64,000 bases of DNA, taken from the NCBI GenBank assembly GCA_965240325.2, contig OZ251229.1, forward strand, positions 1 through 64,000. Direction: 5' to 3'. This DNA is from Rebecca billardiae RCC1528 (Eukaryota; Protista; Haptophyta). Positions 13,661 to 54,459 of this stretch are shown piece after piece. The notes under the pieces are model-generated. The model saw only the letters and a list, made by a program, of their open reading frames with translations, had not been told where the DNA came from and searched no databases. The number at the start of each line of letters is the position of its first letter. Positions within the stretch are counted from its first letter, which is position 1. Made by a program: the position numbers and the translations under genes.

Positions 13661-13723
13661 CTCAGACCCGGCCGACTGCGACAGCGACACCGCGCAAACG
13701 TTGCTGCGCAAGCCGTGCGCTGC

Positions 13724-14834
13724 CAAGGGAGTCAAGGGTGCCCGCGCCCCAGTGGCACGCTCGGCGGATATTGGGATACACGCCTTTTTGCCCGCGGCCT
13801 GCGGCGGGCGGCGGCGAGGGCGTGCTCCGCTGGCGGGGCGAGCGCACGGGGCACGGCGCTGCTGGCGCGGATGTGCCCGTGAAGCCGGCGCGTGCGGACG
13901 GGCTGTTGCGGGAGAGCATTCGGCGCCCTCCTGCGCCGCGCGACTTGCGCCACGCCTCTTTCGCCTCGGCTCAGAGCAGCGCGCACGCACGCGCCGCCTC
14001 AAGGCCAGCCTTGCCGCGCCGCAGCCGGCCGCGCGCGCGCCGTGCGCGGCGCGGTCGGGAAGGAACGGACGCTGCTGCCGGGCGAGGTGGCGACGGCATA
14101 TACGCACGCCATACCGCCCCGCTACGCCTTGATGAGCGTGTCGTCGGTCTGTTTGCATGCCTCTTCGACTTTTTACAAATGGGGTGCACGACCTCGCGGT
14201 CGTGACGCTTGTCGGGACGATCATTGAGACACAGAACAGTGCCAGACGGCCGCGCGGGCTACTCTTTCATGGATGTTCATCACTGCATGGTCATGTAGAA
14301 GTGATGGCTGCGACGCTTTCCTCGCGCTGATGCTCTTTCATCATCTTCTGCGAGCTCAGGTCTGGCTTCGGGCACGACAAGTGATCAGCGCTCGTCAACA
14401 GCTGTGCGGATCCGTTCTCGTGCTCTTTCGCGGCGCCGCGGGGCGGCATGGCGTGCGCATACGCCTTCGCCATCTCGCCCGGCAGCAGCGTCCGTTCCTT
14501 CCCGACCGCGCCGCGCACGGCGCGCGCGCGGCCGGCTGCGGCGCGGCAAGGCTGGCCTTGAGGCGGCGCGTGCGTGCGCGCTGCTCTGAGCCGAGGCGAA
14601 AGAGACGTGGCGCAAGCCGCGCGGCGCAGGAGGGCGCCGAATGCTCTCCCGCAACAGCCCGTCCGCACGCGCCGGCTTCACGGGCACATCCGCGCCAGCA
14701 GCGCCGTGCCCCGTGCGCTCGCCCCGCCAGCGGAGCACGCCCTCGCCGCCGCCCGCCGCAGGCCGCGGGCAAAAAGGTGTATCCCAACATCCGCCGAGCG
14801 CGCCACTGGGGCGCGGGCACCCTTGACTCCCTTG
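13724..14834. mobile_element. Fold-back non-autonomous DNA transposon FB-1 (CAAGGG...CCCTTG, ~400-bp arms, ~315-bp spacer)
   Basis: Arms 13724-14122 and 14438-14834 are near-perfect reverse complements; the termini resemble those of the neighbouring FB-2. Confidence 0.8.
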
Positions 14835-14893
14835 GCAGCGCCCTCTTGCCGCTCGCCTCACCGTGAGGGGCCGCCAGGCTCGCTTGGCTCAGA

Positions 14894-16023
14894 CAAGGGC
14901 GGTAAGGGCTGTCAACTCCCAGTGGCGCCGAGTGGCGGAGGTTGGTTGCCCCTCAACTCGTGCGGCCTCGCGGCGCAGCGGCTAAGTCTCCTGGGGCGCC
15001 GCCCAGGAGGGCGCGTGGGGTGCGCACGCCGCGGGCTCCTGCGGCCGCGGCAGCGGCCGCGGACACGGCGCGCGTGGTTGGTCGCATGCTAGACAGTATG
15101 TAGTACCCTCCCACGCCGCGCGCCGTGCTCGCCGGTGCCCTCGCCGTGCCTCAGGCCAGCCGCGCACGCGCGCCGCACCAATGGCCAGCCGTGGCCACGC
15201 GCCAGCCGCCGGCGCGCGCGCGGTGCGCGGTGCGGTCGGCGCGGGTCGGGCGCGCGCCCGGGGCGAGGCTTGTGTATGATGGGCGCGCGTCATGCCGCCT
15301 CGCGCCGCCGCACACGAGCTTGATCACGTTCCACGCGGCTGCTGAAGGGTGCTCGTCGAGCATTCCTCGGCCATCAGAAATGAGCTTGGACAAGCGGCTG
15401 TGAGCGCACTGAGTGCGAGGAACGCGAGCACTTGGGGGCTCGCGTGCCATAGTATGATGCTAGTCGTGCTCATATCAGTGGTCTGCGCTTGTCTATCACG
15501 CGTCGCTGCCTTCCCATGATCGTCTCAACATGAGCATTTTCAAACATGGCAATGCACACTCGACAGCATGAGAACGCGTGCGCGCCGACCCATGCGGGCT
15601 CCAGCGCGGCGGCGCGAGGCGGCATGACGCGCGCCCAACATACACAAGCCTCGCCCCGGGCGCGCGCCCGACCCGCGCCGACCGCACCGCGCACCGCGCG
15701 CGCGCCGGCGGCTGGCGCGTGGCCACGGCTGGCCATTGGTGCGGCGCGCGTGCGCGGCTGGCCTGAGGCACGGCGAGGGCACCGGCGAGCACGGCGCGCG
15801 GCGTGGGAGGGTACTACATACTGTCTAGCATGCGACCAACCACGCGCGCCGTGTCCGCGGCCGCTGCCGCGGCCGCAGGAGCCCGCGGCGTGCGCACCCC
15901 ACGCGCCCTCCTGGGCGGCGCCCCAGGAGACTTAGCCGCTGCGCCGCGAGGCCGCACGAGTTGAGGGGCAACCAACCTCCGCCACTCGGCGCCACTGGGA
16001 GTTGACAGCCCTTACCGCCCTTG
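14894..16023. mobile_element. Fold-back non-autonomous DNA transposon FB-2 with 7-bp TSD (P/Galileo-like by terminal structure)
   Basis: 418-bp inverted arms at 14894-15311 and 15606-16023; termini CAAGGG/CCCTTG; direct repeat gctcaga at 14887-14893 and 16024-16030. Confidence 0.88.
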
Positions 16024-16157
16024 GCTCAGATCACGGAATTCCCCCGCCGGAACTTGCATGGCCGGAATATGAACATCAGTCATGAGCGCAGCGCCTGGGC
16101 TTCGTCGCTTGGCAACTCGCGCACCGGCCGCCGCCGTCCCTCCTCCCGAGCTCGGCG

Positions 16158-33792: not shown

Positions 33793-34296
33793 GGTCAGGT
33801 CGGTCGGTGGGCTCGCTCGCCGAAGGGCAGGCCGCAGGCGGCCGTGAAAGCGGCTCGGGCGGCGGTTTCAAGGCCCCGCGCAGCACTGGCGGACAGGGCC
33901 GCCGCGGGGTGCTTGATGACGAAAGCAAGCTTCATCAAGCGGGAATTACTTTAGGGAAAACCCCGGAAGTCCGACGAGGACCGACCGAGCAACCAGAACT
34001 CCGACAAACCTCCGCATCTCAGCACGGCGATTTCCGGACTGGCACCCCCGCCAGTTTTCCGACGGCCAGAAGCTTCGGGAGCGAGCAAATGGCGCCGCTC
34101 GCCCGCAACGCGGAAGATACCGCTCGCGGCGAACCGGCGCGAACGCCCGCCTTGTATTCGGGCGGAGTACCCTAATGAGCGGGGGTGGGTACTTTCGTAT
34201 TGCGCGCAGCCTGACGCCCACCCGCGACGAAACGACGCCGTCGACTCCTCCCGCCCGGACCGCCGCCGGAACGTTGCTCGTCAATTAGTTAGAGAA

Positions 34297-37200
34297 ATGC
34301 GACGCCGGGGGGCGCGCCGCAAAACTTGCTCCCGAGCTCGCCACGAGGGACGATCGATGCCTCGCACGACGTTAAGGGGGTACGCCTGCCACGCGCGCGG
34401 GCGTCGTGCGCGCGCCGCGTGGTCGCGCGCGGCGCATCGCGCGCGCGTGTGTCTTCGTTCGCGCGCGCGGCGTGCGCTCGCGCATGTCGTCACGCCGTGC
34501 GTTCTGCGTCGTTGCGCGGCGTCGTGCCCGCGTGCCGCGCGCAGGCCGCCGCCGCCTGCGGGGACGACTCCGACTGCGACGAGCTTCGCGAACGGGGCTG
34601 CTGTGGACGTGGTGTACGAGCAGGGTGCACCGGCAGTCCGTGCTGTGGTCGCGGCGCTTGGGGTCGGCGCACACGGGCGAGTGCAGACGTACGTCCTCCG
34701 GGCTGCCGAGGGAGTGTCTGCTCATGCGTGGGCTGCGGTCCCTGGCGACACCGTCGGTGCGTCCGCGGATGGAACAGTCGAGGGCGCAGGCTCGTTGAAG
34801 AGGGTGCCAGCGGCGCACGTGCGTGCGCCGCCCGCCGGCGAGCAGTGCGCCGAGCAGGGGCAGGGCGCCGAGCAGGGCGCCGAGCAGGGCGCCCTGCTCG
34901 GCGCCCTGCTCGGCGCCGAGCCGGGCGCCGAGCAGGGCAAGCAGGCCGCCGAGCAGGGCGCCGAGCCGGGCGCCGAGCCGGGCGCCGAGCAGGGCGCCGA
35001 GCAGGGCGCCCAGCCGGGCGCCGGGCAGGGCGCCGGGCAGGGCAAGCAGGCCGCCGAGCAGGGCGCCGAGCCGGGCGCCGAGCAGGGCGCCGAGCAGGGC
35101 AAGCAGGGCGCCCAGCCGGGCGCCGGGCCGGGCGCCGAGCCGGGCGCCGAGCAGGGCAAGCAGGCCGCCGAGCAGGGCGCCGAGCCGGGCGCCGAGCAGG
35201 GCGCCGAGCAGGGCGCCCAGCCGGGCGCCGGGCAGGGCGCCGGGCCGGGCGCCGGGCCGGGCGCCGAGCAGGGCAAGCAGGGCGCCGAGCAGGGCGCCGA
35301 GCAGGGCGCCGAGCAGGGCGCCCAGCCGGGCGCCGGGCATGGCAAGCAGGCCGCCGAGCAGGGCACCGAGCCGGGCGCCGAGCAGGGCGCCGAGCAGGGC
35401 GCCCAGCCGGGCGCCGAGCAGGGCGCCGAGCAGGGCGCCGACGGCCGGCCGGCCCGCCACGGCAGCACGCGCGTGGGCGGCGGCAGCTACGCCGCCCAGG
35501 GCATCCAGCAGGAGGCTGCGGGGCAGCGCGGCGCGCAGGGGGCGGCTCACCACAACGGGCGCGGCGGCGTGCGGACGCGGGCCATGCGCCGCCAGCCGCC
35601 ACTTGCGCCACCCGCCGAAGCGCTGCCCGGCGTCACCTCGGCGCCGGCGCCGCCGTCGGCGCCGACGGCGGTCGCAGGCGTCACGGCGGCGCCGGCGGCG
35701 CCGCCTGCGGCCGCCGGCGGCCCCGCGACAAGCGACGAACGCGCCGAGCCGCCACGCGCACCCGTCGCAACGCTGGCGCCGGCGCCGCCGCCGCCGCCGG
35801 CGCCGACGGCGGTCGCCGGCGTCACGGCGGCGCCGGCGGCGCCGCCTTCGGCCGCCGGCGGCCCCGCGACAAGCGACGAACGCGCCGAGCCGCCACGCGC
35901 ACCCGTCGAAACGCTGGCGGGTGCCACCGGCGTCACCGCGGCGGCGCCGGCGCCGCCGCCTGCGGCCGCCGGCGGCCCCGCGACGCGCGCCGAACGCGCC
36001 GAGCCGCCACGCGCACCCGCCGAGGCGCCGGCGGCTGCCACCGGCGTCACCGCGGCGGCGCCGGCGCCGCCGGCGCCGGCTGCGGCCGCCGACGGCCCCG
36101 CGGGCGTCAACTCAGATGACGCCGGTGGTGCTGCCTCGGGCGAGGTGGCACGGGCGGCGACGGCGTCGACCGCGACGCGCGCCGAACGCGCCGAGCCGCC
36201 ACGCGCACCCGCCGAGGCGCGGGCGGCTGCCACCGGCGTCACCGCGGCGGCGCCGGCGCCGCCGGCGCCGGCTGCGGCCGCCGACGGCCCCGCGGGCGTC
36301 AACTCAGATGACTCCGGTGGTGCTGCCTCGGGCGAGGTGGCACGGGCGGCGACGGCGTCGATGGGTGGAGCGGCGGCTGGCGCAGCGGGGTCGCACTCCC
36401 ATGCACCACAGCAGGCGCCCGCCGCCGCGCAACCCGGCGGTGGCGGCCACGCTGACGACGGCGGCGGCGTCTACGGCAGCGGCGACGGCGGCTCACGCGA
36501 GCTGTTCGCGATGAGCGATGTCTTGCAGCACGTGGATCATTTCTTCAGCGGCATCTACGGGAAACGCCGGAGGTTCGGCGGAGACACGCCCGCCGCGCCG
36601 GCGCAGGCGCACGCGCACGTGCTGGTGCGCCCCAGCGCGGTGGCGGATGCGGACGCGCGGACGACGAAGCACGGGCCGCAACCGAACAACGGCCGATTGG
36701 TGCCGGCCATCCTCAGGTTCAACCGCGCGTTCGCGTCACGGCATCTCGGCGGCGGCGGCGGCACGGTCCGCGTGGTGAACGTGGTGTGCGATGCCACGAA
36801 CAACAAGCACTTCGGCGTGCTCACGGATGCCGACGCTGTGCGCGAGCTGTGCGCCTCGGGCGCCTTGTACACGCGCAGCGAGGTGGACGATGCGGTGCGC
36901 GAGTTCTACGCCGGCGCCGCCGCGAGCGTCGGCGGCTCTGTCTCTGAGCTCGCCCTGCGCGCAGCAGGCGAGCACTTCGGTGTGCACGGCCCGTTGCCCT
37001 ACGTCCTCGACGCGGACGTGCGAGTCGCCTTAGCGGACGCTGAGGCCGACGACGATGGCGTCGCAGGCGGCGACGCGCCCTGGGTTCACCGGGCGCTTGC
37101 GTTGCCCTCGATGCGGCGCTCGGGACAGGCGGTGTTCGGCCTCCCCGCCGTGGTTGCACAGGCGCCCTCCTGGTGCGCGCTTGTGCCCACGCCGCTGCGG

Positions 37201-39440
37201 GCGCCCGCTGAGCAGGGGACGTCGCCTTTGCTGCACGCCGCCGTGGCCGTGGTGGACTACCGGTCCGTGGACACCGACGACACCGACGAGTCGGAGCCCG
37301 TCGTCGGCGCGCACGCGTACGCCATCCGCTTCGAGAAGGGCTGGCGCCTCCTCACCTTCGCCACGCGGCCGCCCAGTGGTGCGGCGGGCGCGATGACGGC
37401 TGCGACGTGCACGGACCTCACGGTCGACGCCTTCGCCGCCGCCGTCAGCCGGCGTGAGGTTGCTGCGTGCGAGCTGCAGTCAGCGCCGCCGCGGGCCATT
37501 GCGCCCCCCGTCCAGCACGCCGCCCCCGCGCTCCACGACTCGCCGCCCAGCCCGGACGAGACGGACGCGTTGCCGCCCCGCCCGCGCCGGGACGTGGTCC
37601 CGACGTCCACGGACGTGCTCATGGGCGCCTCCGCGGTGTGCAGCGCGCTCGGCATCGGGCCATGCCATTGGGCGCCCGATGGCGACCCGCCCGGGCTCAT
37701 GACGAACGCCGCGGCCATCGCGGAGGCGGCGCTCACGTACGTGCAGTCGAACTACGACGTGATTGGGGGCACGGCGGCGTCGGCGGACCTGCTGCACACG
37801 CTCCACCAGATCATGGTCGCCGGCCGCCCGCAGCGCTCGTTTGACAGGCCTCTCCCCCGGCCGGGCGGTGGGACGCGCGTGCGCGTCGCAGGCGTCGTCG
37901 GCGAGCTGCCCGTCCATGAACAAGAGCTGATGCTCGCCTCGAAGCACACGTGCGTCGCGGCGGCCATCGCGTGCGCCTCGGCGCTCGTGCTGCGCGTCAA
38001 GGCGGCACACCTGCGATACGACGCCCTCGCCGACGTCAGCGTGGGCGATGGTGCGTCCTTCGAGGCGGCGGACTACCTCACCAAGGTGCGCATCGTCAGC
38101 GCACGGCTCGTCGCGCCCGAGCGGAAGAAGCGGCTCACCTTCGAGCTCCTCGCCGTCTCCGAGGATAACGCCGGTGCTTACGACCGCGTGCTCAACGCCG
38201 ACACGAGCTCGCGGGCACTCCACCGGGACGAGGTGCTCGAGTTCACCTACGTGCCTTCGAAGACGCGCTCGTGGAAGTCGACGGAGGCGCTGTCAACGCA
38301 CAGCCGCGCGGCGGCCGGCGACGACGCCGACGCCGGCAACTTCGGCACGCTGTTCTTCGTCCCGCACATGCGCGACCCCGTGAAGGCAGCCGCCCTGGCG
38401 CGCCCGCCGCCTGCCGGGACGCCACCTGCCGCGCCGCCCGTGGGTGCGATTGTGGACTTTCGCCCCTTGTGCATCAGCGTGTGGGCTGACATCGTCCCGT
38501 TCTGCCAGGATCGGCTCTGGACGCACCCGGCGGACCCAGTCACCGGCAAAAGCAGCGGCGTGGACGCGCCGAAGATGTACGCCGCCGCGCTCCACAGGCG
38601 CGCGCCCTCGCTGGCGCGGCACGTACAGGCGGCGCCAGCGCGCAAGCGTCGCCTGAACGAACGCGGCGCCGACGCGGGCGGCGCGGGCGGCGCCGCCGGT
38701 GGGCGTGTGGTGGCGCGCCGGCCGGTCGGCGACCCGGGCCGCGTCGCCGTCACACGGCCATCCGCCGTCGCGCGCGCACCCGGGCCACCCGAACAGGCGA
38801 CGCGCATGTGCACCGAGCTCGCTGCGGCCCACGCCCAGCTCGCTGAGATGGTGCACGGCATCCCCAACGCAATGGCACAAGCGATCGGACAACTCGCTGC
38901 GAACGACGCCAAGCGCCAGAAGGACTACGAGGCCTGGCGCGCGGCGGACGACGAGCGGCGCCGGCAGGAGCGCGCGGCGGACGAGGCCTGGCGCCAGCAG
39001 GAGCGCGCGGAGGCGGCGCGCCGACGCGACGAGGATCGCGCGGCCGCAATGAAACGTGACGAGATCGCGAGCGCGATGGTGGCGTCTATGCAGGCGTTGA
39101 CGCAGTTCATGATGGACCGCAGCGCAGGTGGCGCACAGCCCGGCCCGCACGCGTCGGCGCACGCGGCGTGCGTCCAGCTGCCAACAGGCGAAGCACCGCA
39201 CGGCGCGCACGCCCCGGCTGCGGGCCCGTCGGTGAGCGCTGCGTCCGCTGCGCCCACGTCGCGCGCACCCACGGCACGGCGTGGCGCGCCGCCGCCGGTC
39301 GCATTCGGCCAGCGCGCGCGGCGCCGAGTGCCGCCCCCTGACTCGCGTGTGCCCGCCAGGCCGCTGCACTGTCGCTCCGTGCGCCGGCCGCGCAGGCCGA
39401 CGAAGCCCCCGCGGGCCAGCCCCCGCCGGCCGCGCAGTAG
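34297..39440 (+). CDS. MULE second (accessory) gene, ~1,600 aa, unknown function; predicted introns 34380-34544 and 39232-39359 (unspliced ORF runs to 39996)
   Basis: 1899-codon ORF starting inside the left TIR; GAEQ repeat, Pro/Ala repeats, globular-looking core at ~36500-38600, basic ARKRR motif, C-terminal coiled coil. Confidence 0.7.
34849..35439 (+). repeat. Coding minisatellite, 12-bp ggcgccgagcag ([11 protein letters not shown])
   Basis: Direct reading; frame preserved throughout. Confidence 0.95.
35620..36362 (+). repeat. Coding internal duplications (~120-bp units and a 192-bp unit)
   Basis: ERAEPPRAP occurs four times; 35978-36169 is repeated at 36170-36361. Confidence 0.85.
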
Positions 39441-39992
39441 ACGCCGACCCACAAGGGCGCGTCCTGACGTGCCCACGCGCCGCCCACAGGTGCGCGCACA
39501 CACCACATCGGGCGGCGCCAGCCGTGCGCACGCCGAGCGGCGTGTACGCGCAGCCCTGGCTCAGTCGCGCCCGACCGCCCCCGTGCGCGCGCGCGCGTCG
39601 CGGTGGCGTGCACAGGCTGCGCGCCACCCGGGGCGGCCACGCGGGTGGCCGCCACCGCTGGCAGCATCTGGCCACGAGCTCGGCACCCGGGGTGCCGGCG
39701 GAGTGGCTCGTCGGAATCGCCGTGGCCTGAGCCCGGTTCTCCGAGCACACGGCCACAGGCACCCCCCCGGCCAGCGCCTCTGCGCCACTCGCAGTGACGG
39801 CGCCACAAGGGCCTACGGCGGGGCCCGCCGAGAAGGTCTTAGCGCAGGTCTTAGCGGGATGCAAGCAGCGCCACGCGCGACAACACTGATACACGCCGCC
39901 GGGGGCCCACACTGTGCCGGCCCGTGCTATGTCGTCGTCAGCTCGGACGCAGGCCGGCCGGCCGGTGCCGTGAGTCGGCGCCTGTCGTTCTG

Positions 39993-42900
39993 TTAGCTGG
40001 CACCTGGCGTGCTCAGGCGGCGTGGTGCGCACTCAACGTACCCCTGCAAGGGTGATGTAGCTCGCATGAAGTGCGCCAGACGCCCCTCGTTGTTGTCGCG
40101 CGCCGAACGCGCCTCCAGGGGCGCCGTCGCCGACACCACCGCGCCGAAGTGGCAACGGCCGTCGTACACCACGGCCATCCACGTCGTGCCCAACTGCGTG
40201 ACGTCCAGACGCTGCAAGGCGCGCCGCGTGCGCTCGTCACGCAGGCGCAGGTGCGCATGCGTGCTCACGGCGACGCTGCCCTTGCGCCCGCCGTCGTCAG
40301 TCCGCCGCCAGCGAAGGCCCGGCCGCGTCTGCACGGGGTAGAACCAGACGTTGTCGGTGAACGCGCGCCACGCCGCCTCCTCCGGCGTAGCCCCGCCGCG
40401 CAGCTCAAGGACCACCAGCGGCAGGCCCGTGGCGCGCGCCGTCGCGACGTGCGAGCCCCACGCCGACCACGCACCAGCGCGCGCCGCATGCGCGCCAGCG
40501 CCGTCGCCCGTGTACCGGGCGCCGCGCGCGTACGCGCGCGCCGCTGCTCCCAGCGTCCGCACGCCTCCAGTATGTCGCAGTGGCAGTGGCAGCACCTCCT
40601 GCCAGTCCTCGTCCTGCACTTCGAGTCCTTGGCCGGTGCGGGCCCGGGGGATGGATGCTGGCTTGACGCCAAGCATGCCGAGCGCGCTTGCCGCCGACGC
40701 CGTGGCCGACGCCGTGCCGAGCGTCTCGCCCGGTCCGTGCTCGTCCTCCCACGACGCGATGTACGAGCACACGCCGTCGCGCAGCGTCTGCGCGCGCGCG
40801 TTGGCGGCGGGCAGGTCGGCCCGCACGCCACGCGTGTCGTGCGCGAGCCACGCGTGAAAGTAGCAGTCGCCATCGCCGGGAACGTCCTGCACGCTCGTGC
40901 CGCCGCCGAAGAGCTCGCGGATGGCCGCGGCGACGTTGCCGTCGCCATCCACGCCGCCGGGTGCTCCGGTCTGTGCACCAGCCCGCGCCTCGGGCGGCAA
41001 CGCCGGCGGCAGGGGCAGCACGGGGAAGCCCAGGCGCTCGAGCAGGACCGCGGCGTCGTCCACCGGCGCGTGCACGTGTGCGGCGGCCGCCGGAGCCACC
41101 GCAGCCGGCGCAGCCCCGTGCCCGGCGGGCGCCGGCGCCGCCGCACCCGCGTCCACGGTGGCGTCCGTCGCCGCCGCGGCGCGCGGCGCGGCTGCGCCGC
41201 GTGGCGCGGCATCACCCGCCGTCACGTCAGCGCGGCATCGCTCCGCCGTCACGTCAGCGGCGGTCTCGCCCAAGGCCAGGCGCAGCCCCAAGCCCACGTC
41301 GCACCGCCATGCCCCGTCGGAGCCGTCGAGAGGGACCACCTCGGTGCCGAACGCGCTCGGGTCCAGCGCATCCACCTCGCACCCGCGCCGCCTGGACGCC
41401 AGCCTCACGTGCGCGTCCGCAGCCGGCTGGAACGCACTCCAGCGCGACGCCGGCAACACCCCGTGCGCGCGCGGGGTGGCCTGCGGCGCAACCACTGCGT
41501 AGAACTGCCGGCGAGGACACACGTTGCGCACGATGGCCACCCAGCCGGTGCCCATCGCCCCGACGTCGAGCGTGCGCAGGACGCGTGCGTGCGTCTCGCG
41601 TCCCAGGCTCAGGCGCGCTTCGCACAGCGGACGTGCGTCCGCGTGCGCGGCGCCTGCGTCGGGCGTGTCGGCGCGCCGGCGCTTCGCGCCGGCGCCCCCG
41701 CGAGCGCGTGGCGCCGCCGGCGCCGGCGGCACGCGCACTGCCGTCGGAGGATACCACCGCACGTGCTCACGCATGGCGACGCCGTGCACGTCGCGAGCTC
41801 GGCGTGCGTAGGCCATGTCGAAGACGAGGAGGTGCACGCCGGCGGCGCGAGCGACTGCCGCGTACCACTCAGGGCCATCGCACGTGTTGCCCGGGCTGCT
41901 GACGTACCCGTCGCACGTGTACTCCGCCGCTCGCACTGCCAGCGTCACTGCGTCGTCCAGATCGCGCACGCCCTGGCCGGGGGTGTGCCACGACGACGAG
42001 TCGTCGGGGGCCACCATGCGCAGAGCCCGCAAACGCGCCTGCCCAGCTTCGTCGCCACCTGCGCTCTCCGGGGGAAGTGCGCGCACGTCAGCGCCGCACA
42101 AGCCGATGAAGCGCGCCTGCGCTCGCAGGTCCTCTGCCGACTCGGCCGGGCCCAGCGCGCCACCCCAGCCGACGGAGTGCTCGGTGGGCGTGGCATGCGC
42201 GTGCGCGGCCAGCCACGACGCGGCCGCCGCGCGCAGGCGCCGCGCGCAGCACGCCCACCACAGGGCCTCAAGCGTGCTGGGCGGACGCGCCCGCGCGTGC
42301 GCGTGCGCGAGCACCGCGTGCAGCACGTCGTCACCGTCGGCTGGCACGGGCAACGGCTGTGCGGCGCCCGCGCCCCAGAGGTCGTCGAGCACTGCCTGGG
42401 CGCAGCAGAGCCGTAATCGGGCGAATTCGGCGTCGTGGTCGTCTGCGCCGGCGGCGGCGTCGGCGGCGTGGAACAGGCGCACCGGCGCGTGGCGGTCATC
42501 GCCCGCGGCGCGCGCTCCAGCGTCGCGCACCGGCAGACCAGTGCGCGCCAAGTGGGCGACCGCGTCGTCCGCGGTGGCGACGGCTGTGTCGTCCGCGGCA
42601 CCAGACGTGCCACGCGCCGTCCCCAGCAGGTCGGCGCCTGCGCGCGTTGGGCCCGGCGTCGGCACCGACCGCGCCGCCGACGATGGCCCCGCCGTGGACG
42701 CGCGGGCGCCCGCCGCCTGGCGCGAAGCCGGCGGCAGGCGCCCATCCGCGGCCGCACCGCCCGCGTCGTCGGCGGCGGCCGCAGTCCGAGGGCGCTTGGG
42801 CGCGCACGGCGCAGACGCGGCCCCCGCGCCCGCGCGGGAGGTGCCAGCCGCGGCGCCCGCCTGGCCTGCGGCGCCTGCGCCCGCGCCGCCGCCGCCAGCC

Positions 42901-45900
42901 AGGACGTCCGCCAGGCCCGCCGCCGCCGCCGCGACGTCGTGTGCGCCTGCGTGCGCCCACACGTGGGAGGCCGCGTTCGGAGCGGCGCCGCCCGAGCCCC
43001 TCGCGCCGCCACTGCCCTCGGCGGGCACGGCGGGCGACGCGTGCGCGCGCGCCAGCTCGGCGGGGGCGGCGGCGGCGCGCGCAAACTGTGCCAGCACCTT
43101 GCCCGTCGTCGCGCTGGACGCGCCGAATGCGTCACCGGCCGTCTCGCTGAGCGTGGGCCACGGTGCTGACAGGCCGCGACTGCACATGAACATGGCTGCC
43201 CTGCCCCGACCGATGCCAGGTATGCGCCGCAACGCCGCGAGCACTGCGGCGCTGTCGTCAGCGAGGCGCGCGTACGCCGACTCGGACTCCGCCGCCTCCG
43301 CCGGTGGCTCTGCCGCGCCCGCGCGCGCCCGAGGGACTCGCGCACCCGGTGGCGGTGGCGCGTGGGCGCCGGGCCACGGGGGGCGGAAGGGATGCTCAGT
43401 CGCCGCCAGCGGTACTGTGTCGCCCGTGGCCGGCAGCGGCTCCGCGGCGTGCGCGCGCGCGCGCGCGGCGGGCGTCGTGCCGGCGTCCGCGCCACTGCGC
43501 GGGCCCGTCGTGCCCTCAGGCGGTGCGGCCGGCCGCTGCGTGGCGGCGTTTGGCATCGGTGCCGTCGCGAAGCCCATGCGTACGCCGGTGCCGCCAAGTG
43601 CCTGCGAGGCGATCGCGCGCGCGCAGTGCCGGCGCGGGCCGCCGCGCGCGCCCGCGCCCGCCGCGGCGGCGCCGTCGCGCGTCTGGGCGGCCGCCGGCTG
43701 CGCGCGCCCGGGCGCGGGCGCCGCCGCGCCGCGGCCCCCGCGGCCGCCTGCGCGGCCCCCGCGCGCGCCTGCGGTGCGCGCGGGGTCGCCGCGCGCGGCC
43801 CCACCGCCGTGCTGTCCGCGCATACGGTGGTATGGCACGTCCTCCGGCCTCGCGCCGCGCGGCCCGTCGGGCGCCGCCGCCTCGCCCGCCGCGGCTGCGC
43901 GCGCTTCGCGCAGGCGCTTCCACGCCCCCGCGACGAGCAGGAAGTAGCAGCACGTGCACATGTACAGCCCGCTGTCCAGCGCGCCGAGGTGCCACACATA
44001 CTTGCACTGCGCGGGCGAGTGGATGAAGCAGGCGCAGCCCTGGCACGCCAGTCGGGGGTCGATCGGCGGCGAGTCCGCCGGCCACGCCGCGCTGAGGTCC
44101 GCGGCCTCGGGGTCGAAACACGCGCAGCAGCGCAGTTGCGCGGCGGCGGTCGTGCCGGCCGTGTACGTGGCAAAGTGGCGACGTCGCTGGTTCGCAACCA
44201 CACCCTCGCGGAGCGGGCCGGCCACGCGCACGAGCACGTTAGTGTCGTCGAGCACGTGCGTGTGCGCGATGCCGTACAGGTGCTCCGGCAGCCCCTCGAG
44301 CACACGCGCGAGCTCGTCGCGGTGCGCTTCGCGCACGCGCCGGGCGAAGTCGCCGTCCGGGGCTTGCTCCCTCAAGGGGCGCACGTACGACGCCGCGGAT
44401 TTGCCCAACTGCACGCGCGGCGCGCGCGCGCGCGGTGCGCGCGGGTGGCGCGCCCCGGCGCGGCCCTCCCAGAACGCCAGCCGTCGCGCCGAGGACGCGG
44501 GCCTGCCCACGCGCGCGGGCACCGCTGGCATGGCCACGTACTTTTCGAGCAGGGCGCGCTTGGCGAGAGCGGGCAGCAGCAGAGCCGCAATGGCGTCCTC
44601 CAGGCGCTGGGGCGGTGTGATGACGTCGAGCTTGGTGATGGCCACGACGCGCCCGAGCGTGTCCACCCGGGTGTCGTGTGCGTCGCGCTCGACCCGAAGG
44701 CCCACCTGCGCGAACCACGTCTCGCAGCGCAGGTCCTGGGGCAAGCACGTGCCCATGGCACGGCCGACGGAGGTCGCCACGCGGCAGAAGTGCATGCACG
44801 GCAGGCGCTTGCGGCGCAGCAACGCGCAGCACCGGAACTCGTCGAGGTACACGTGGCGCGGCGCCGAGCCGTCCGTGGTGTTGAGCATGCGCAGGGCACC
44901 TGCGTGCGGCCCGTCGAGGACACGGTGCACTTCCACCTGAGAGAGCGTGCGCGCCGTGCTCACCTGCTGGCGCACGTATTCCAGGTGCCGTGGCGGCAAC
45001 CCGTGCACCTCATCATCGGCGTCGGGCTTCAGGGCGTGGCGCACGGCGACGCTGCGGTGCGTCGCGTAGAGGCGAAAGAGGTTGTCGTGCAGGTCGAGCA
45101 GCATCCACACCGGGCCCTGCGCCTTGCGCACCGGCAGCAGCCAGTGCATGAAGGACTCCGCCGGCGCGGACGTCACGTAGCCGCGCAGGGACACCGGCGC
45201 GAAGCACGGGAAGAGCTCCTCGCGGGGGATGACGTCGAGGATGCGCTTGGCCGACTCTGGCATCTCCACCCAGGCGGCCTCCCACACCTCCTCGGTCAAC
45301 GCGTCCACGCACGCGTCGAACACGCGCAGGATGGTGGGCACCTCGTTCGCCGAGTGTGCGTAGCCCGTGATGAAGGTCTGGCGCTTGTGGAACGTGCACA
45401 GGAAGAGGTGCCTGCGCGGGCACAGCAGCTTCCACGCGCCGCGCAGGCCCTTCTGGCCGTCCGAGATGGTGACGCCGTTGGGGTCGTCCCACACAGCCGC
45501 CCCGCCGAGGTGCTGCATGAGGTATCCGACGTGCGCGCACCACGAGTCCAGGCACTCCACGTCGACGATGTACGACACGCACAAGACGAACAGCTGCCGG
45601 TTGGCGTTCACGGCCAGCGTGACGAAGAGCATGCCTGCGTCGCGCGCGTGCGTGCGCGCGGGCAGGTCAGACGGGCGGGCGCTGAGGCGGCACGGACGCA
45701 CGCGGCGTCGCGAGGGCGTGCCCGGGTGCGGCGGGCGCGCGCACCCGCGCGCTTCGCGCCACCGCTGGCGGGGCGGTGCAGGAAGCACGCGTCGCTGAAC
45801 GCGGCCGTGTTGCCCTTCGCGTGAAAGTGCTCGCGGTAAAGCGCCTTGGCCTGCTTGGGCACGTAGTGGAAGCCACCCACTGCCTTCTTGCCGCGCACGT

Positions 45901-48900
45901 CAGCCAGCGCCTTCTGCACCTCCGCCGCGTCGGGGTTGAAGGCCGCGCGCTGCGCGCCCGCCGGCAGCCCCTGCTGCACCTCGTCGTGCACGCGGCCGAA
46001 CATGGCCAGCAGCGCGTCCTCGACCGAGTTCTCGTGGAAGATGATGGGCGCGACCTCGTTGCCCTCCTGCGACAGCGACGCGCACACGGCCACGAGGTCG
46101 CGCGACATGGCCGTGTCGTCCCCGTAGATCTCGGCGCGCGCTTCTTTGTGCGCTCGCGCGATGAGCGATTCACCCATGGGGAGCTCTGCGTCCAGCTGGC
46201 GCGCGACCTCTCGTGCTTGCTGCGGGCCGTAGCACAGCTGCGCGTGCGTGGTCCCGCGCCGGGCCAAGCGCGCCTTCCAGTCCTCGACGATCGCCCGCCC
46301 GAGCTCGTGTTGGGAGTACGGCGTCGTGCGCACGCCCGGCTGGTTGGTCGGGCGCGGCAGCGAGCCGATGGGGTGTTCCTCGGACCCCTTGCCCATGCGC
46401 AGGTTGCGGCACATGGAGCCGTGCGCGACCGAGCGTTGCACGGCCCACGGCGGCGCGCCAAACGTGTCCACGTACTTCGACGGGCCCACCACCACCACGG
46501 ACGGGCACCCGGGCGTGGGGCATCCGATCGTCAGCTTGGCGCGGTCGACGCGCCGCGTCGGCGGCATGGCCCCCCGGTGCAGCGCGCACTCCGAGGCGTG
46601 CGTGAGCGCGTCGGCGAGGCGCGGGTACACCTGGCGCACCATCGGGGGCTCGAGCAGGGTGGCGTCCGCCTTCACCTGGGAGTACGGGCGCGGCGCCCGC
46701 AAGCCCATTTTCCTCCACAGTGCCAGGGGCCGGAGCTCGAGGCGGTGCGCTGCCGCCGACGTGCTCGCCGAGGTGCTCGACGGCGCGGAGTAGCGGAAGT
46801 ACCCGGCGTCACCGCCGTGGTGCAGCGACTCCGGCGCAACAAGCCGGGCGCCGGCCTGGCCGGCGCGGGGCTCGGCGGGACCGGTGGAGGGCGGCTGCGC
46901 GCGAGCGACGATGGGTGGACACGGCATGAGGGCAGCCAGCGGGTCGCGCGCGCGAGCGGCGTCGCTGTCGGCGGACTCGTCCGCCTGCAGTGCCGCCTGC
47001 GCCGCGCGCGCGCGGGCGTCCGCGCAGTCGTCGTCCGCGATGCCCTCCTCCCAGTCGCGCACGTCGATGGCGGCACTGGCGGGATCGGCGTCCGTGACGA
47101 GCGGCTCGCCGCGGGCGTCGGACTCGCCGACGCGCATCGTCGGCCAGTCCGCGCTCAGGGCGAACAGCGGCGCGTTGCCGCGGGCGGCCGCCGTCGTGTG
47201 CGTCCTATGGCCCACGGACGCGTCGACGAGGGGCACTCCACCGCGCGCCCATGCGGGCGCCGACTTCTCCGTCGCCAACGCGTCGGCAAGGTGGCCACCG
47301 AGGTGGGCACGCTGGCCGGCGTGCAGGGCCAGGGCGAGGTCCCCGCCGGACAAGAGGCCACCTGCGTGCGGCAGCGCAGGGAGGGCCCTCAGCCGCGCGT
47401 CGTCGTCGTCATTGCCGCCGTCGCCACCGGAGGCGCCGCGCGGCTGCGGCGGCGCGCGCGAGGCGCAGCCGGGCGGCTGCGCGATCACCGCGCGCGCGCT
47501 GCTGCTGTCGAGGGGCGGCCCCGCCGGGTGGAGTGGCGGGCGCGCCGTCGCGGCGCACACAGCAGCGCCGGGCACCGTCACCGCGACGCAGGGCACGGCG
47601 TCGCCCGCAGCGCAGGGTGCGCCCGGCGCTGGCGTTGCCACGCGAGCGGGCGAAGAGTGCCCATCGCCAGGCCGCGGCGACGCGGGCTCGTGCGCGCCCG
47701 GCGCGTCCGAGCTCGAGCTTTGGCGGGCGCCGGTGTGCCGCAGCGGGGCGGACGCTGCGTCGGGGCGACGCACGGCCGTGGGCGCGCGCGGCCCGACAGC
47801 CGGGTCGTCAACGCCATCGGCGCGTGGGGGCCGCGCGCCCTCGTCAAAGGGGGCGCCCACGTGCGCGCCCGTGCCGTGCGCGGCCGCGGCGGTGGGCGCG
47901 CGCCCACCGCCGTCGGCGTGAGGCGCGGGGTGGCCGCCCGCAAGCCCCACGACGTGGGGCACGGCAGGCGCCGCTGCGCGCTCATGTGCGAGCTGCGCGC
48001 CGTCGGCAGCGCACACGGGCAGCGCCAGCTGCAGCGCCGACTGCGCCCAGGCCCGCTGCTCGTGGTCCGACGGCGCCTGCTGGCCGTGCGCCGCGGTCGG
48101 CAGGTCGACCACCAGGCGGGAGACGTACTCGTGGTGCGCAGGCGAGCCGAGCCGGAAGCGGGCGTCAGCGCCAGCGCGCGTGGGCTCAGCCCCCCAGCGC
48201 AGCCTGGTCTCAAACGAGTGCTGGAGCCCGCGCTCGAGGGCGGGCACGAGCCGATACGGCGTGGGAGGCGGGTCGGAGCGCGCCGCGCACGGCGTGGCGG
48301 CGGGGCGAGGCGCGCTCGGCGGCGGCGTGAACGAAGCGCGGAATGTGTCCGCGAGGCCCCGCCCCCCGAATGAGAACACAGCCTTCAGGACGAGCGCGTC
48401 CGCCGCACCCTGACGCGTAGGCCTCTTGCGCGAGGACGACGGCACGGACCCCGAGGACGCGGCGCGCGCACTGGGGGCCGAGCGGTGATGCCACATGGCG
48501 GGGAAGATGTGCACTGCACCTGCGCTTTCCTGCAGGGCAACGTCGCCGTGCAGCGGCACGGCGTCGGCGCGCGCACCGGGGGGGCGCGCGCCGACCGTCT
48601 GCAGCGGGAAGGGATTGGTGGGCACACTTTGCGGCAAGTGCAAGAGGACCACTGCCGTCCACAGATGGTCCTCGTCGGTCGTGCCGTCGACGTGCCACCC
48701 GTACGTCGTGACGTCGCCGTCGTCGCACGTGCCGCGGCCCCCGTCGGGCGGACGCATCGGCCGCCCGAAGACATGCCAGGCCGTGAGGTCGAGCGCGTCG
48801 AGGCCGCGGACACCGTCAGAGGCGTCGCCGCGGAACAACGAGCTCACGACGCCCTTCAGCGCCGCCACCACGCGCTCAAAGGCGCGGCACCCCAGCACCG

Positions 48901-51376
48901 AGCGCGCAGAGGAGCCGTGGTCGCCCACCCCCCAGCGCCGCTGCGCGGCCGCCTCGCCGCCCGCGTCCGCGGACTGGTACGCGTGCACCGTGCGCAGGAG
49001 GCCGCCACCCTCATCCAGCAAGGGCATGGACGCATCGCCGTCCCCGCCGAGGCCTGCGTGCTGCAGCACGTACTCGCGCAACGGGCCAACCAGCACGCCC
49101 ATGTCCATGTCCAAACGCTGCGGTGCCGCAGCGGCGGCACCAAACGCGGCCTGCAGCGCGCGCCCAACCGCGGCGTTATGCGCGAGCATGTCGTCGAGGC
49201 TGGGCGCGGGCGCCGCCGCAGGCGTCGGCGCCAGCGCGTCGCCCAGCGGCGGCTCGCCTGCAGGCGGCAGCGCGCGCGGCACCACCACGGCGGAGGCAGG
49301 GCGCATCGCGCCCGACGCCGCGCTCGTCACCTCGTCGCGCCACGGCGCAGCGGCGCCCACGACAGCGTGCGCACCGCACAGCGTCAGCACCAGCGTCACT
49401 GGCGGCTGCGAGACGGCCGCGCCGGCCACGAGGGCCTGCGCGAAGGTGGCGTCGAGCAAGGGGTGCAGACGCGCGCCCTCGCCGACGTGCACCAGCGCGG
49501 GCGCGAGCGGGATGACCACTGCCCACACGGTGCGCTCGGCGATGGTGGAGGCGGCCCGCAGCAACGGCCGCGCCAGCCACCCTTCGCGCAGCGAGCCGTC
49601 CTCGCACGCGGCCACAAAGGCCGCAAGACCGGCGTGGCCGTCGGCGACCACGGCAGCACGCAGCCTGACGGCGGCTGCGCGCACGGCGGCGTCACGTCCA
49701 GCGGCGGCGCCGGACGTGGCAGCGCGCGGCGCTCCATCTGCCGCCACCCCTTCGCCGGCCCCCACGACGGCCTGCGAGACGGCGCCGAGCCACGCCAAGC
49801 GGGCGCTCTCGAGTTCCGCACGCAGCTGCTGGTCGCGCCAGCGTGCCTGCTCAGCCGACGCGGGAACGAACGCGCGCGGCTGCGCCGGCACGGGCGCGCA
49901 GAGCGCGCGTACGGCAGCGTACGCCTGCGTGCGCAGCTCCGCCGCTCGCGCACGCAGCGCGTCCGCGCAGAGGCTGCTGCGGCCTGCTGGCCACGACGCC
50001 ACGCGCTCGAAGGCGACGAACAGAGGCTCGGACTGGCCAGCGTCCGCGCCGAAGACGGCGCGCGCGTAGTACATCACCGCCTCGGACGGGCATGACAGCG
50101 GCGGGCACGGGGGGGGCGCGCCCGTCCAAGCGCCCGACGGCGCCGCCGCCGCCGCCGTCGTCGCCGGGAGCACGTCGTCGACGCCTCCGCCAGTCCCAGC
50201 ACCTGGGCGGGCATCCGGACGGGGGGCGCACAACGCCGCCAGAGCCAGCTTCGTCCGGAACGGAGCGGCGGCCCAGGCCGCACGCACTGCCCACGCGCAT
50301 GCGCCCTGCGCGTGCTCAGCGGCGCGTGCGTGCTGCCCTGGGGTCGGCGCCGAGGACGACGGCGACAGCGACTCCGCGCCACCCGAGCGGCGCGCGTGGG
50401 ACGTGCCTGCGGGCGGCGGCGCCGGTTTCCCTCCGAGCGCCGCTGCGGACGCCGTCAGTCGCGCCGTCTCCGCGAAACTGCCCTCCTCCGCCAGAGCCCC
50501 GTCGGCGGAAGCACCACAGGCAGCGCGCACGGCGATCTGCGCGACGGCCCTGAACCAAAGGGCCGCCGCGCACACGCGCGCCACCGAGTCCGCGCGCTCA
50601 CGCAGCGCGTCCGGGTGCGAAGCCAACAACTCCGCACACTCCACCACAGTGAGCAGCGCGTCGGCGCCGCTGCCACCCCATACGCGCGGCACTGTGACCT
50701 GCGCAGCGGCGGCGCCAAGGCCCACGTCGGTGCTGTGGACCACGCCGAGGGTGCACAGCACCAGACCAAAGGTGAACGTCCACGGGGCTGCTGCCGAGGA
50801 GAACTGCAGCGTGCACAACGCGTCGTCAGCCGCTGCGATCACCGCGTCCACGAGCAGCAGGTCGTCCTGACTGCTGGGGCCGGCGGACACATGCCGCATG
50901 CCCGCCTGCGCGGTACGTGCCAGCACGTGCGGCGGAGAGGCAAACGCAGGCGCGCGCGAGCACACACACGGGGCACATCGTCAGACAGGGGACGGGGGCG
51001 CATGGGAGTGGTGCTGTGTGCGCGCGCGCGGCGGCGCACGCCACCAACATCGCTGCCGACCACACACACCCGCCCCGGCCCACCGCGACCTCGCACCATT
51101 CACGAATCACGAGTGCGACTTGCCTGCTCGTCGCGGCCGGCGACCGTCGACGCCTCAGACCGACTCGGATGCGAGAAGGGGGAACTCCTGCGAGGGGAGG
51201 CCGCAGGGAACAAGAACGGTCGGTGCGTGTGCGCGATGCGCCGCGCGCGACCGCGCGGCGCGCGCACGACGCCCGCGCGCGTGGAAGGCGTACCCCCTTA
51301 ACGTCGTGCTCACGCCCAGCCCTCCCTCGTGGCGAGCTCGGGAGCAAGTTTTGCGGCGCGCCCCCCGGCGTCGCAT
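39993..51376 (-). CDS. Multidomain MULE transposase, predicted ~3,650 aa (exons 51294-51376, 51124-51187, 45745-50905, 39993-45634)
   Basis: MuDR ZnF CPTPGC...HGSMC; spliced FSDACFL..GMLFVTLAVNANRQ; ISDGQKGL...HLFLCTFH; TSAPAESF (Glu); SWIM CC..LPCMH; PHD-like C/H pattern; HhH IPGIG; OTU PGDGDC...HFGA; 2OG-Fe(II) WHVD...IFP..HHRS. Confidence 0.85.
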
Positions 51377-51880
51377 TTCTCTAACTAATTGACGAGCAAC
51401 GTTCCGGCGGCGGTCCGGGCGGGAGGAGTCGACGGCGTCGTTTCGTCGCGGGTGGGCGTCAGGCTGCGCGCAATACGAAAGTACCCACCCCCGCTCATTA
51501 GGGTACTCCGCCCGAATACAAGGCGGGCGTTCGCGCCGGTTCGCCGCGAGCGGTATCTTCCGCGTTGCGGGCGAGCGGCGCCATTTGCTCGCTCCCGAAG
51601 CTTCTGGCCGTCGGAAAACTGGCGGGGGTGCCAGTCCGGAAATCGCCGTGCTGAGATGCGGAGGTTTGTCGGAGTTCTGGTTGCTCGGTCGGTCCTCGTC
51701 GGACTTCCGGAGGATTCCCAAGAAACAAGTAAACAAGGCCCGGCCTCCATCTCTCCTCCGCCGTGCGCGCCAATCGTCGGCGTAGCTCTCGGCCTCGCGG
51801 CGGCACCGGGATCCCCCGCCCGCTGCTGCTCGCGGCGGCCGCGCGCGCGAGGGCGCGGGGCGGCGGCGCGCGGCGGCGGC

Positions 51881-54459
51881 ATGTTCAAGTCGAACCCGTT
51901 CGACGTGTACGCGCGGTACACCAAGCGCAAGAACGACCTGTGCGCGCTGGTGAGCGAGGCGCGCAAGCTGCTGGGCGCGCTGCACGCGGAGCACGAGCGG
52001 CTCTCGCGCGCGCCGACGGGCGTGCCGTGGATGCTCGGCCCGGACATGCCGACGGACCAGCAGCTGAAGGAGCTGATGGAGCGGCTGGTCAACGACCGCA
52101 TCTCCGTGCTCGTGATGGGCGAGACCAAGAACGGCAAGTCGACGTTCATCAACGCGCTGCTGGGCGCGGAGGTGCTGCCCTCCGCCAACGTGCCGTGCAC
52201 GTCCGTCATCTGCTCCGTGCAGTACGCGGACTCCAAGTGCGCGCGCGGCGCGCGCGCCCGCGGCGGCGGCGGGGCCGCGCGCGCGCGCGCCGCCCGCGCC
52301 CACGCGCCGCGCGCGCGCGTGCCGCGTGCCGCGTGTGCGCGCGCACGCACGCGCTGCGCGTCGGTCCGCAGGTACGCGCTCGTCACGCGGCGCAACCACG
52401 CGGACGCGGCGGCCAAGGAGATGGTCGACCTCAAGTACGCGCCGACCTCGGCGTACGCGGCGTCGCCCGCGCGCGGGCGGAACGGCGCGGCGCGGGCGAA
52501 CGGCGCGGGCGCCAAGGCGCCCGGCGGCGCGGGCGGCGGCGGCTCGGCCGCCTCGTCGCCGCGCGCGTCGGACGGCGGCGCGGACGGCGGCGGCGCCGCC
52601 GCCGCCGGCCCGCGGCCGGGCGACGCGCTCCGGCCGTACGTGATGACGCCGCGCGCGCAGCGCGACTTTGAGTCCAAGTACGAGTGCGTCGAGGTGTTCT
52701 GGCCGCTGCCGCTGCTGCGGCACAACGTGGTGCTGGTGGACACGCCCGGTCTGAACGAGCGCTCGTCGATGGACGTGGTTGTGCGCGAGCACCTGCCGCG
52801 CGCCGACTGCGTCGTCTTCGTGCTCAACGCGACCAAGGCGATCACGCACGTCGAGGCGCGCGCGATCACGGAGGTGCGCGACCGGCTGGGCCACGGGCAC
52901 ATGTTCGTCGTGCTCAACAAGATGGACCAGGTCGAGGTTGCGGAGCTGGAGGCGACCAAGCAGTGGGTGGGCGAGACGCTGGCCGAGCTGCTGCCCGACG
53001 CCACCTCGGACGCGGAGAGCGTCGTGCGGGGCACGCCCAACCGCGCGCTGTTCGTGCACCACGTCTCGAGCACGGACGCGCTGCGCGCGCACGCGCGGGG
53101 CGAGGAGGTGCCCAAGCCGTTCAAGGCGCTGCACGAGTGCGTGGGCAAGTACCTCACCGCCGAGCGCTTCCGGCCCAAGCTGCTCTCGGGCGGCGCCGCG
53201 CTCGCGCACGCGCTCGGCGCGGTCGCGGCCGGACTCGAGGCGCAGCGCGCGCAGCTGGCGCACGCGAGGGCGGCGCGCGGCGCGCAGCGCGAGCGGCTGG
53301 CGCGCATGTCCGAGCTCGCGTCGTCCAAGCAGGCGCGCCTCGAGTCGAGCGTCGCCGCGCTGCACGCCGAGCTCGCGTCCAACATCCAGCGGGTGCGTGC
53401 GCGCGCGCGTGCTGCTCGCGCCCCGCTGCGCGGCCGCGCGCGCGCCGCCCGCCGCCGCGCGCACTCACGGGAAGCGCGCGCGCGCCTCCCCGCCGCGTGC
53501 AGGCGCTGCTGAGCTACCTGCACTCGCTGCTGCCGCGCGTGGAGGAGATCGCGATGGGCCTGGACGAGGCCACCTTCGTGCCGCGCCGCTCCACCGAGTA
53601 CGCGCGCGACGCGCTGAGCGAGGTGGGGCGCGCGCTCGAGGCGGACCTGCGCGCGTGGGTGGCGCGCGAGCTGCTGCCGCTGGTGCAGCAGGCGTACGAC
53701 GACGTGATCGCGGCCACGCGCGCGGAGCTGGGCGAGCTGGTGCGCGAGCTCAAGCTCCTCGACGGGCTCGCGTTCGGCGGGCTGCACGGCATGCGGCTCG
53801 GGCAGTCGACCGGTGCGCGCGCGCGCGCGCCGCCCGCGCGCCACACCGTGCCCGCGCGCGCGCGCGCGCTCACGCGAGCGCGCGCGGTCCGTGTGGGCGG
53901 TGCGGCGGTGCGGGCAGACGCGAGCCGCCTGATCGAGAGCCTCGACTTCCACCGCTCGCTCAAGCGCGCGCACAACGGCATGGCGGTGGGCGGGTGCGCG
54001 ACCGCGGCGGGCGCGACGGTCGTCGGCGTCAAGGCGGCGGTCGGCGGCGCGCTCGCCGCGGCGGTGGGCGCGGTGGGCGCGGGCGGCTGCCTGCTGGCGA
54101 CGCTGGGCGTGGCGGTGGGGTGCCAGCACTACCACGCGCTCTCGCACCTCAAGAACTCCGCGCCCGAGATCAAGCAGCAGGCGGCGATGGAGGTGCAGAC
54201 GCGGCTCGCCGCCGCGATCGACGACGAGTCGGACGCCGGCCTCGTGCCCACGCTGAGCGCGGCGGCGGTCAAGCCGATCGACGACGCGGTGCGCCACCTG
54301 TTTGGCACGTACGCGATGCAGCTCGCCTCGATCGACAGGGCGAGCGGCACGCTGCAGCACGAGACGGACTCGCTGCAGGACGCGCTCGACTCGGTCGAGG
54401 CGACGCTCGCCAAGTGGACCAAGCTGATCAACCGGACCAAGGAGCTGCTCGCGGGGTAG
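51881..54459 (+). CDS. Dynamin-superfamily GTPase, mitofusin/bacterial dynamin-like type (introns 52237-52371, 53393-53502, 53813-53917)
   Basis: G1 GETKNGKSTFINALLG; G2 PCTS; G3 DTPG; G4 NKMD; coiled coils; Gly/Ala-rich hydrophobic hairpin near the C-terminus. Confidence 0.88.

Follow-up and report, generated by a model that had tools for sequence, protein, structure and literature searches.

A probable prolyl-hydroxylase-like oxygenase domain in frame with a Mutator transposase in the haptophyte Rebecca billardiae

Several selfish genetic elements carry captured 2-oxoglutarate (2OG)-Fe(II) dioxygenases. TET/JBP genes are carried by 11 lineages of fungal DNA transposons, including Kyakuja, Dileera, Zisupton, Plavaka, hAT, EnSpm and Helitron, with MuDR not listed among them (Kojima 2025, PMC12730594). 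Active AlkB is present in Gypsy elements of the orchid Phalaenopsis (PMC9289625), and AlkB domains occur in the replicase polyproteins of plant RNA viruses, where they are flanked by poorly conserved stretches (PMC2553587). MuDR families with SET genes and with Vandal anti-silencing proteins are also known (PMC12730594). Here we describe a Mutator-type element of Rebecca billardiae RCC1528, located within positions 1 to 64,000 of contig OZ251229.1 (the window, 64,000 nucleotides of the forward strand), of which the transposase gene very probably encodes, in the same reading frame, a true descendant of the double-stranded beta-helix (DSBH) oxygenases.

The element resembles the fungal TET/JBP transposons in being a cut-and-paste element with a 2OG-Fe(II) dioxygenase, but the dioxygenase is of a different family, and the fungal study (PMC12730594) describes genes in elements, the words "fused" and "fusion" being absent from it. 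With the AlkB-bearing Gypsy elements and plant viruses it shares the capture of a 2OG dioxygenase by a selfish element, the viral AlkB also being a domain of a polyprotein; those enzymes are AlkB-family RNA demethylases, however, whereas AlkB signatures are absent here and the carrier is a DNA transposon. Long terminal inverted repeats (TIRs), a DDE core with CxxH, zinc fingers, a convergent second gene and protein-modifying cargo are features of Mutator and Mutator-like elements (MULEs; Dupeyron 2019, PMC6446971), from the surveyed members of which this element differs in its size (17.8 kb), its 3,592-codon transposase, its oxygenase domain and the lack of a target-site duplication in the present copy. 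The word "oxygenase" is absent from that survey of 1,631 MULEs (PMC6446971), and a literature search of incomplete coverage found no prolyl-hydroxylase-type oxygenase fused to a Mutator transposase. A first-pass annotation of this DNA had spoken of a new system, which is an overstatement since TET/JBP in fungal DNA transposons and active AlkB in orchid Gypsy elements are already known; what is new is this dioxygenase clade as transposon cargo and its in-frame fusion to a Mutator transposase. Cargo enzymes of transposons are pointers to host defences, and TET/JBP and AlkB cargo indicated 5-methylcytosine (5mC) and N6-methyladenosine (m6A). A prolyl-hydroxylase-type domain with intact iron ligands in a Mutator transposase would indicate that the conflict between host and transposon is waged through protein hydroxylation, or through an as yet unknown base chemistry. 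The domain is small (~200 residues) and directly assayable.

The oxygenase domain and its relatives

The motifs reported in the first-pass annotation were all confirmed, in position and frame, on the minus strand within the open reading frame 50965-45608: YGWHVD (His at 48694-48692, Asp at 48688-48686), WTAVVLL (from 48661), GAVHIFP (from 48520), WHHRS (distal His at 48487-48485) and VLKAVFSF (Lys at 48385-48383). The HxD motif, the distal iron ligand H805, K839, a zinc-finger-like motif and D1703, the first catalytic Asp of the transposase, all lie in one minus-strand frame that is stop-free over 1,790 codons, so that the fusion of oxygenase and transposase does not depend on the splice predicted further downstream. 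The GC content of third codon positions (GC3) is 0.75-0.97 along the whole frame of exon 1, and a codon model trained on the neighbouring host genes scores the domain at -0.09 in frame versus -0.62 and -1.27 in the remaining minus-strand frames, a preference not seen in the predicted intron. Because of its stop-free frame, GC3 and frame preference, the segment is considered coding, and an intronic origin, which the first-pass annotation had named as a possible refutation, is rejected. The frame may contain hidden in-frame introns.

By ESM features, the clusters nearest to the domain are diatom and viral ones of 2OG-FeII_Oxy_3 (0.94), and ten out of ten belong to one clan. Skipping 2OG-FeII_Oxy_3 leaves a haptophyte cluster, Oxy_5 and OGFOD2-like clusters as neighbours, and skipping seven families leaves HalD, Oxygenase-NA, Asp/Arg hydroxylase and Ofd1. 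Hidden Markov models (HMMs) were built for a family picked after the ESM lead, namely phage and bacterial 2OG oxygenases gathered from an Escherichia coli YbiX seed, and were scored without filters. They give the domain 15.9, 16.3 and 14.6 bits (per-sequence E ~4-5e-7, corresponding to E ~0.01 for a library the size of Pfam), the runner-up among 979 six-frame tiles of the window scoring 0.1-0.7 bits; none of 10,000 shuffles, global or local, reached the score of the domain. Manual excision of three loops raises the score to 17-19.8 bits, with an hhalign probability of 93.7, and for the whole protein the score is just 7-9 bits. In a MAFFT alignment W735, H736, G794 and H805 fall on invariant columns, and the three iron ligands of classical 2OG-Fe(II) oxygenases are found as H736, D738 and H805, in invariant or near-invariant columns. 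The first-pass proposal of a DSBH domain sharing the frame of a Mutator transposase is supported by the HMMs, ESM, the alignment and the stop-free frame.

Library searches were blank. Pfam, PHROGs and NCBIfam scans returned nothing for the whole open reading frames, the domain or the motif pieces, and tblastn and a PDB sequence search with domain queries gave no match; a search restricted to proteins of similar length was also blank, which is uninformative on shorter kin. PF13640, the 2OG-FeII_Oxy_3 profile of Pfam itself, does not match the domain, and similarity to this family appears with our own YbiX-type HMMs and with ESM but not with the Pfam profile.

Structure prediction, suggested as a check in the first-pass annotation, gave a divided result. 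AlphaFold produced no fold from the single sequence (predicted local distance difference test, pLDDT, 33). The alignment-guided model has a mean pLDDT of 64, with insertions confined to loops and a disordered 25-residue loop followed by the Lys-bearing strand (pLDDT ~77). The reference sequences had been trimmed after strand VII for this purpose because the full-length MAFFT alignment set their strand VIII on the inserted loop, and strand VIII alone is predicted without the help of the alignment, which biases the remaining model. A fold search with the guided model places prolyl hydroxylases first (Z 8.4, root-mean-square deviation 3.6, 131 residues aligned), ahead of NgTET1 (6.9) and FTO (6.7), a ranking that is not independent evidence since the model was steered by sequences of the prolyl-hydroxylase clade.

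By its sequence, the domain appears to be prolyl-hydroxylase/PKHD (2OG-FeII_Oxy_3)-like and not of the TET/JBP or AlkB branch, in agreement with the first-pass opinion that its motif spacing resembles prolyl-hydroxylase-like families more than TET/JBP. PDB entries retrieved by matching the alignment profile are PiuC/PKHD, a chlorovirus prolyl hydroxylase, a transmembrane prolyl 4-hydroxylase (P4H), a Phytophthora P4H and Pseudomonas PPHD. An Oxy_5-like profile scores -0.7 bits on the domain, and an AlkB HMM, a narrow profile, scores 1.6-2.2 bits, equalled by 1% of shuffles. Strand VIII reads K-A-V-F-S-F-G (K839 to G845). RxS on this strand is the signature of TET/JBP, and RxxxxxR that of AlkB. 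Membership in TET/JBP was rejected in a comparison by motif, ESM and Pfam, since RxS is missing, the ESM searches list no Tet_JBP cluster and Pfam is blank; membership in AlkB was rejected because RxxxxxR is missing, the AlkB HMM score lies within the range of the shuffles and ESM lists no AlkB cluster. The basic residue that anchors 2OG is on strand VIII (Arg) in classical enzymes and on strand IV in JmjC proteins (PMC2938197). Here strand IV, as predicted, is devoid of basic residues and a Lys is present on strand VIII, and JmjC membership was therefore rejected as well. The basic residue is K839, in a register that we infer, since a 25-residue insertion precedes it. The first-pass annotation had drawn attention to Lys at the usual Arg position; the Lys is there, but it is not unusual for the clade, being found on strand VIII of 9 of the 50 reference sequences.

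Prolyl 4-hydroxylases share a Tyr three residues before the first His ligand (H-3; Tyr310 of PHD2) and an Arg that holds the substrate proline (Arg322 of PHD2), the latter used in this way by all prolyl 3- and 4-hydroxylases (PMC4396695). The domain has the Tyr (Y733), and since the substrate-binding Arg is replaced by H745, it is regarded as P4H-like and is not filed as a P4H member. The spacing between D738 and strand III is that of PHD2. The domain shares with the PKHD clade (PF13640: YbiX/PiuC, cyanophage oxygenases, chlorovirus vCPH, PHD/EGLN and algal P4H) the pattern YxxHxD...G..FP..H, the basic residue of strand VIII and the H-3 Tyr, and differs from it by His for Arg before strand III, loss of the GG motif and of the strand-I Tyr, long loop insertions, less than ~25% identity to any aligned member and its position within a transposase. 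Among the phage oxygenases collected from the YbiX/PiuC clade, a location beside DNA endonuclease V genes is recurrent, which hints at a part in DNA repair for some of these enzymes.

Possible functions of the domain

The favoured reading, to which we assign a probability of roughly 45%, is that the domain is an active protein hydroxylase of the prolyl-hydroxylase-like clade, captured and carried by the transposase. An oxygenase of the prolyl-hydroxylase/PKHD clade would have been captured by a Mutator element and would now lie in the first half of the transposase gene. Transcription of this gene would start in the right TIR, a single splice would fall within the DDE core, and the polyprotein would go to the nucleus. 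The domain would bind Fe(II) by H736, D738 and H805 and anchor 2OG by K839 and S843, and would hydroxylate a protein side chain, most likely Pro, acting as a divergent prolyl hydroxylase and not as an eraser of 5mC or N6-methyladenine (6mA). The likeliest targets would be the Ala/Pro-rich linkers of the element's own transposase or its second protein, or else a host protein at the site of transposition. In concert with the OTU-like tail of the transposase, hydroxylation could adjust how stable the transposition complex is, how it is ubiquitinated or how it binds its partners, a role like that proposed for accessory protein-modifying domains in other large transposons. The OTU-like tail, recognized by motif, suggests a second protein-modifying activity. 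Both element proteins contain 8-10% Pro with numerous Ala-Pro steps, which recalls the viral prolyl hydroxylase that modifies viral Pro-rich proteins (cited in PMC4396695). The sequence has diverged extremely, yet every iron ligand is retained and the loops alone have received insertions, which suggests that the active site has been under selection.

Several observations weigh against this reading. A phmmer search with the domain against 1.8 billion proteins found no relative at E 0.001, and the number of ESM features shared, 159, is below the 170 typical of same-family matches. His stands at the position of the P4H Arg (H745), Trp at that of the strand-I Tyr (W708) and Gly at that of the Trp six residues beyond the basic residue, and the GG motif has been lost. 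The domain also has a poorer codon fit (-0.09) than the DDE core (+0.24). None of the public RNA runs covers the stretch, and one low-depth run gave short near-identical contigs (48769-49105 with zero differences) without splice joints.

The domain could instead be degenerate or non-catalytic cargo, a captured oxygenase fragment whose frame was kept because stops would kill the transposase, and which may bind iron, 2OG or peptide while having no selected catalysis. Such a history would agree with the replacement of four family-conserved positions, three long low-complexity insertions, a codon fit no better than that of the linkers, and the failure of phmmer to find relatives; yet divergence that has taken the rest past the reach of BLAST has spared all three iron ligands, as well as the basic residue, the Tyr at H-3 and the paired G..FP..H strands, and insertions occur only in loops, a pattern expected from purifying selection on an active site. 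We consider inactive cargo rather unlikely; it would reduce the finding to a further peculiarity of an outsized Mutator family. A chance motif in a GC-rich, Ala-rich frame has in its favour the blank Pfam, PHROGs, NCBIfam and PDB sequence searches, the failed single-sequence model and the low whole-protein HMM score, but it is largely refuted, and scarcely credible, given eight strands in the correct order, a score that is unmatched by shuffles and unique within the window, the agreement of two unrelated methods (ESM and HMM) and the unaided placement of strand VIII.

The first-pass annotation had raised the possibility of a base-modifying oxygenase, which would call for a change of substrate within the prolyl-hydroxylase-like clade, peptide being exchanged for nucleic acid or chromatin: the transposase would bring an active domain to its own TIRs, where oxidation of 5mC, 6mA, T or alkylated bases in the DNA or RNA of the element would erase or rewrite a silencing mark. 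TET/JBP and AlkB cargo of other transposons acts in this manner (PMC12730594, PMC9289625), and the fusion to a DNA-binding nuclear enzyme, the loss of the peptide-binding Arg, the gain of a basic loop and the endonuclease V neighbours of phage clade members are in keeping with it, as is a weak hint of methylation, CpG being slightly lower in the element than in flanking host DNA (1.27 versus 1.36-1.39) and TpG/CpA higher (1.21 versus 1.02-1.07). However, strand VIII has neither RxS nor RxxxxxR, the score of the narrow AlkB profile lies within those of shuffles, and three ESM searches, including the one with seven families skipped, list no AlkB, Tet_JBP or JmjC cluster; the idea is not supported, and a substrate switch of this kind is improbable. 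Were it true, a 2OG dioxygenase would have been recruited independently for transposon anti-silencing a third time, after TET/JBP and AlkB, and in this case from a clade of which no member is known to modify the DNA of eukaryotes. An active small-molecule oxygenase, or a sensor of oxygen, iron or 2OG that ties transposition to the metabolic state, is very improbable: PHD-type enzymes are oxygen sensors, and the neighbours of PKHD/PiuC and HalD type are not all protein hydroxylases, but there are no pathway genes within the element and no direct sign of such a role.

The transposase gene, the element and its chromosomal setting

The transposase gene consists of two long minus-strand frames, 50980-45611 and 45899-39996, which fuse into 3,592 stop-free codons from an ATG at 50899 when a predicted intron is removed (Table 1). 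This intron splits the MULE core, with D1703 before it and D1771, CxxH and E1872 after it. The Pfam MULE match to exon 2 (E 0.014, short of the curated cut-off) spans positions 17-95 of the 99 in the profile, and the unmatched part is just what exon 1 contributes; the MULE core as query gave no match in homologue searches. The zinc-finger-like motif upstream of the core is presumably of MuDR/FAR1 type. Of the two OTU-like modules (40150-42010), the second has GDGDC..H, and the first, in which Ser replaces Cys, looks inactive from its motif. The OTU and PHD assignments are by motif, the Pfam scan having no match for either.

Table 1. Coordinates of features of the Mutator-type element in the window
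Feature	Position	Strand	Basis
2OG-Fe(II) oxygenase domain (DSBH), residues ~665-846: N-terminal helix, strands I-VIII, three inserted loops	48362..48907	-	ESM features, own HMMs, alignment, alignment-guided AlphaFold model
Y733-x-x-H736-x-D738, iron-binding HxD and prolyl-4-hydroxylase-type Tyr at H-3	48686..48703	-	Alignment: W-H in invariant columns, D in a near-invariant one
H745, replacing near-invariant Arg that opens strand III (peptide-binding Arg322 of PHD2)	48665..48667	-	Alignment; Arg role PMC4396695
Strands VI-VII, G794..F-P800..H805 (distal iron ligand)	48485..48522	-	Gap-free family-profile match, 11 bits by itself
Insertion of ~25 residues, Ser/Ala/basic with RKR, between strands VII and VIII, predicted disordered	48398..48472	-	pLDDT <50
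Strand VIII: K839 (2OG-anchoring position), S843	48368..48397	-	Predicted strand, pLDDT ~77, no alignment rows beneath
Main exon 1 (first ATG 50899): uncharacterised N-terminal part, 2OG domain, Ala/Pro-rich linker, zinc finger, first catalytic Asp	45763..50905	-	
Zinc-finger-like motif C-x4-C...H-x3-C (C1460-C1497), upstream of DDE core	46409..46522	-	Motif
MULE DDE core: D1703 (45793, exon 1), D1771 (45461), CxxH 1792-1795, E1872 (45158)	45156..45793	-	
Predicted GT-AG intron, 128 nt	45635..45762	-	Sequence prediction
Exon 2: remaining DDE core, SWIM-like finger, Cys-rich PHD-like stretch, weak HhH, two OTU-like modules	39993..45634	-	
SWIM-like finger (exon 2)	~44830-44790	-	
PHD-like stretch (exon 2)	~44125-43940	-	
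HhH (exon 2; E 0.099)	~43240-43180	-	
Second OTU-like module	C3303 at 40865, H3541 at 40151	-	
Two candidate leader exons, 51376-51294 and 51187-51124 (second with GC donor), adding ~51 residues in frame	51124..51376	-	Prediction
Right TIR (~490 bp)	51226..51719	.	Inverted-repeat comparison
Left TIR	33954..34447	.	Inverted-repeat comparison
Second, convergent gene: 1,899-codon frame, GAEQ minisatellite, Ala/Pro repeats, without family match	34297..39996	+	

The element is 17,766 bp long and delimited by TIRs of ~490 bp, which pair over 397 bp at 99% complementarity (33954-34350 with 51323-51719) and over a further 84 bp at 95%. Of the marks of Mutator and MULE elements, the DDE core with CxxH and the long TIRs are thus present, and a target-site duplication of 8-11 bp is lacking in this copy, the flanks 33945-33953 and 51720-51728 sharing no word of at least 6 letters; the full-length copy is possibly a recombinant of two insertions, or was affected by an adjacent deletion. 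The element contains two convergent genes, the minus-strand transposase gene and a plus-strand second gene, which at 34839-36361 has a 12-bp minisatellite (~52 copies, GAEQ) and tandem duplications of 114-192 bp, Ala/Pro-rich. Each TIR (34297-34379 on the plus strand, 51376-51294 on the minus strand) carries an identical ATG and 83-nt exon ending at a GT donor, which is predicted to splice in frame directly to the second gene and, via a 64-nt exon with a GC donor, to the transposase; the two element proteins may share a basic N-terminus of 28 residues. A contig from the low-depth public RNA run has six differences at 45376-45405 around CxxH (three silent, three replacing), a hint of a diverged sister Mutator family.

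At 34 kb from the telomere, the element separates two host genes that face away from it, with their 5' ends towards the element: a minus-strand gene that starts near 33790 and a gene for a dynamin-family GTPase (51881-54459; Pfam Dynamin_N E 6e-12), beyond which a matrixin-like metallopeptidase is encoded (54820-57504; E 3e-4). The window, with a base composition of ~74% GC and short, GCGC-rich introns, starts with the CCCTAA repeats of the telomere, followed by a 183-bp satellite (2305-3887). A 66-bp motif occurs seven times between 4771 and 13421, and two additional inverted-repeat pairs at 13717-16029, with arms of 349 and 432 bp that are ~300 bp apart, resemble small non-autonomous elements.

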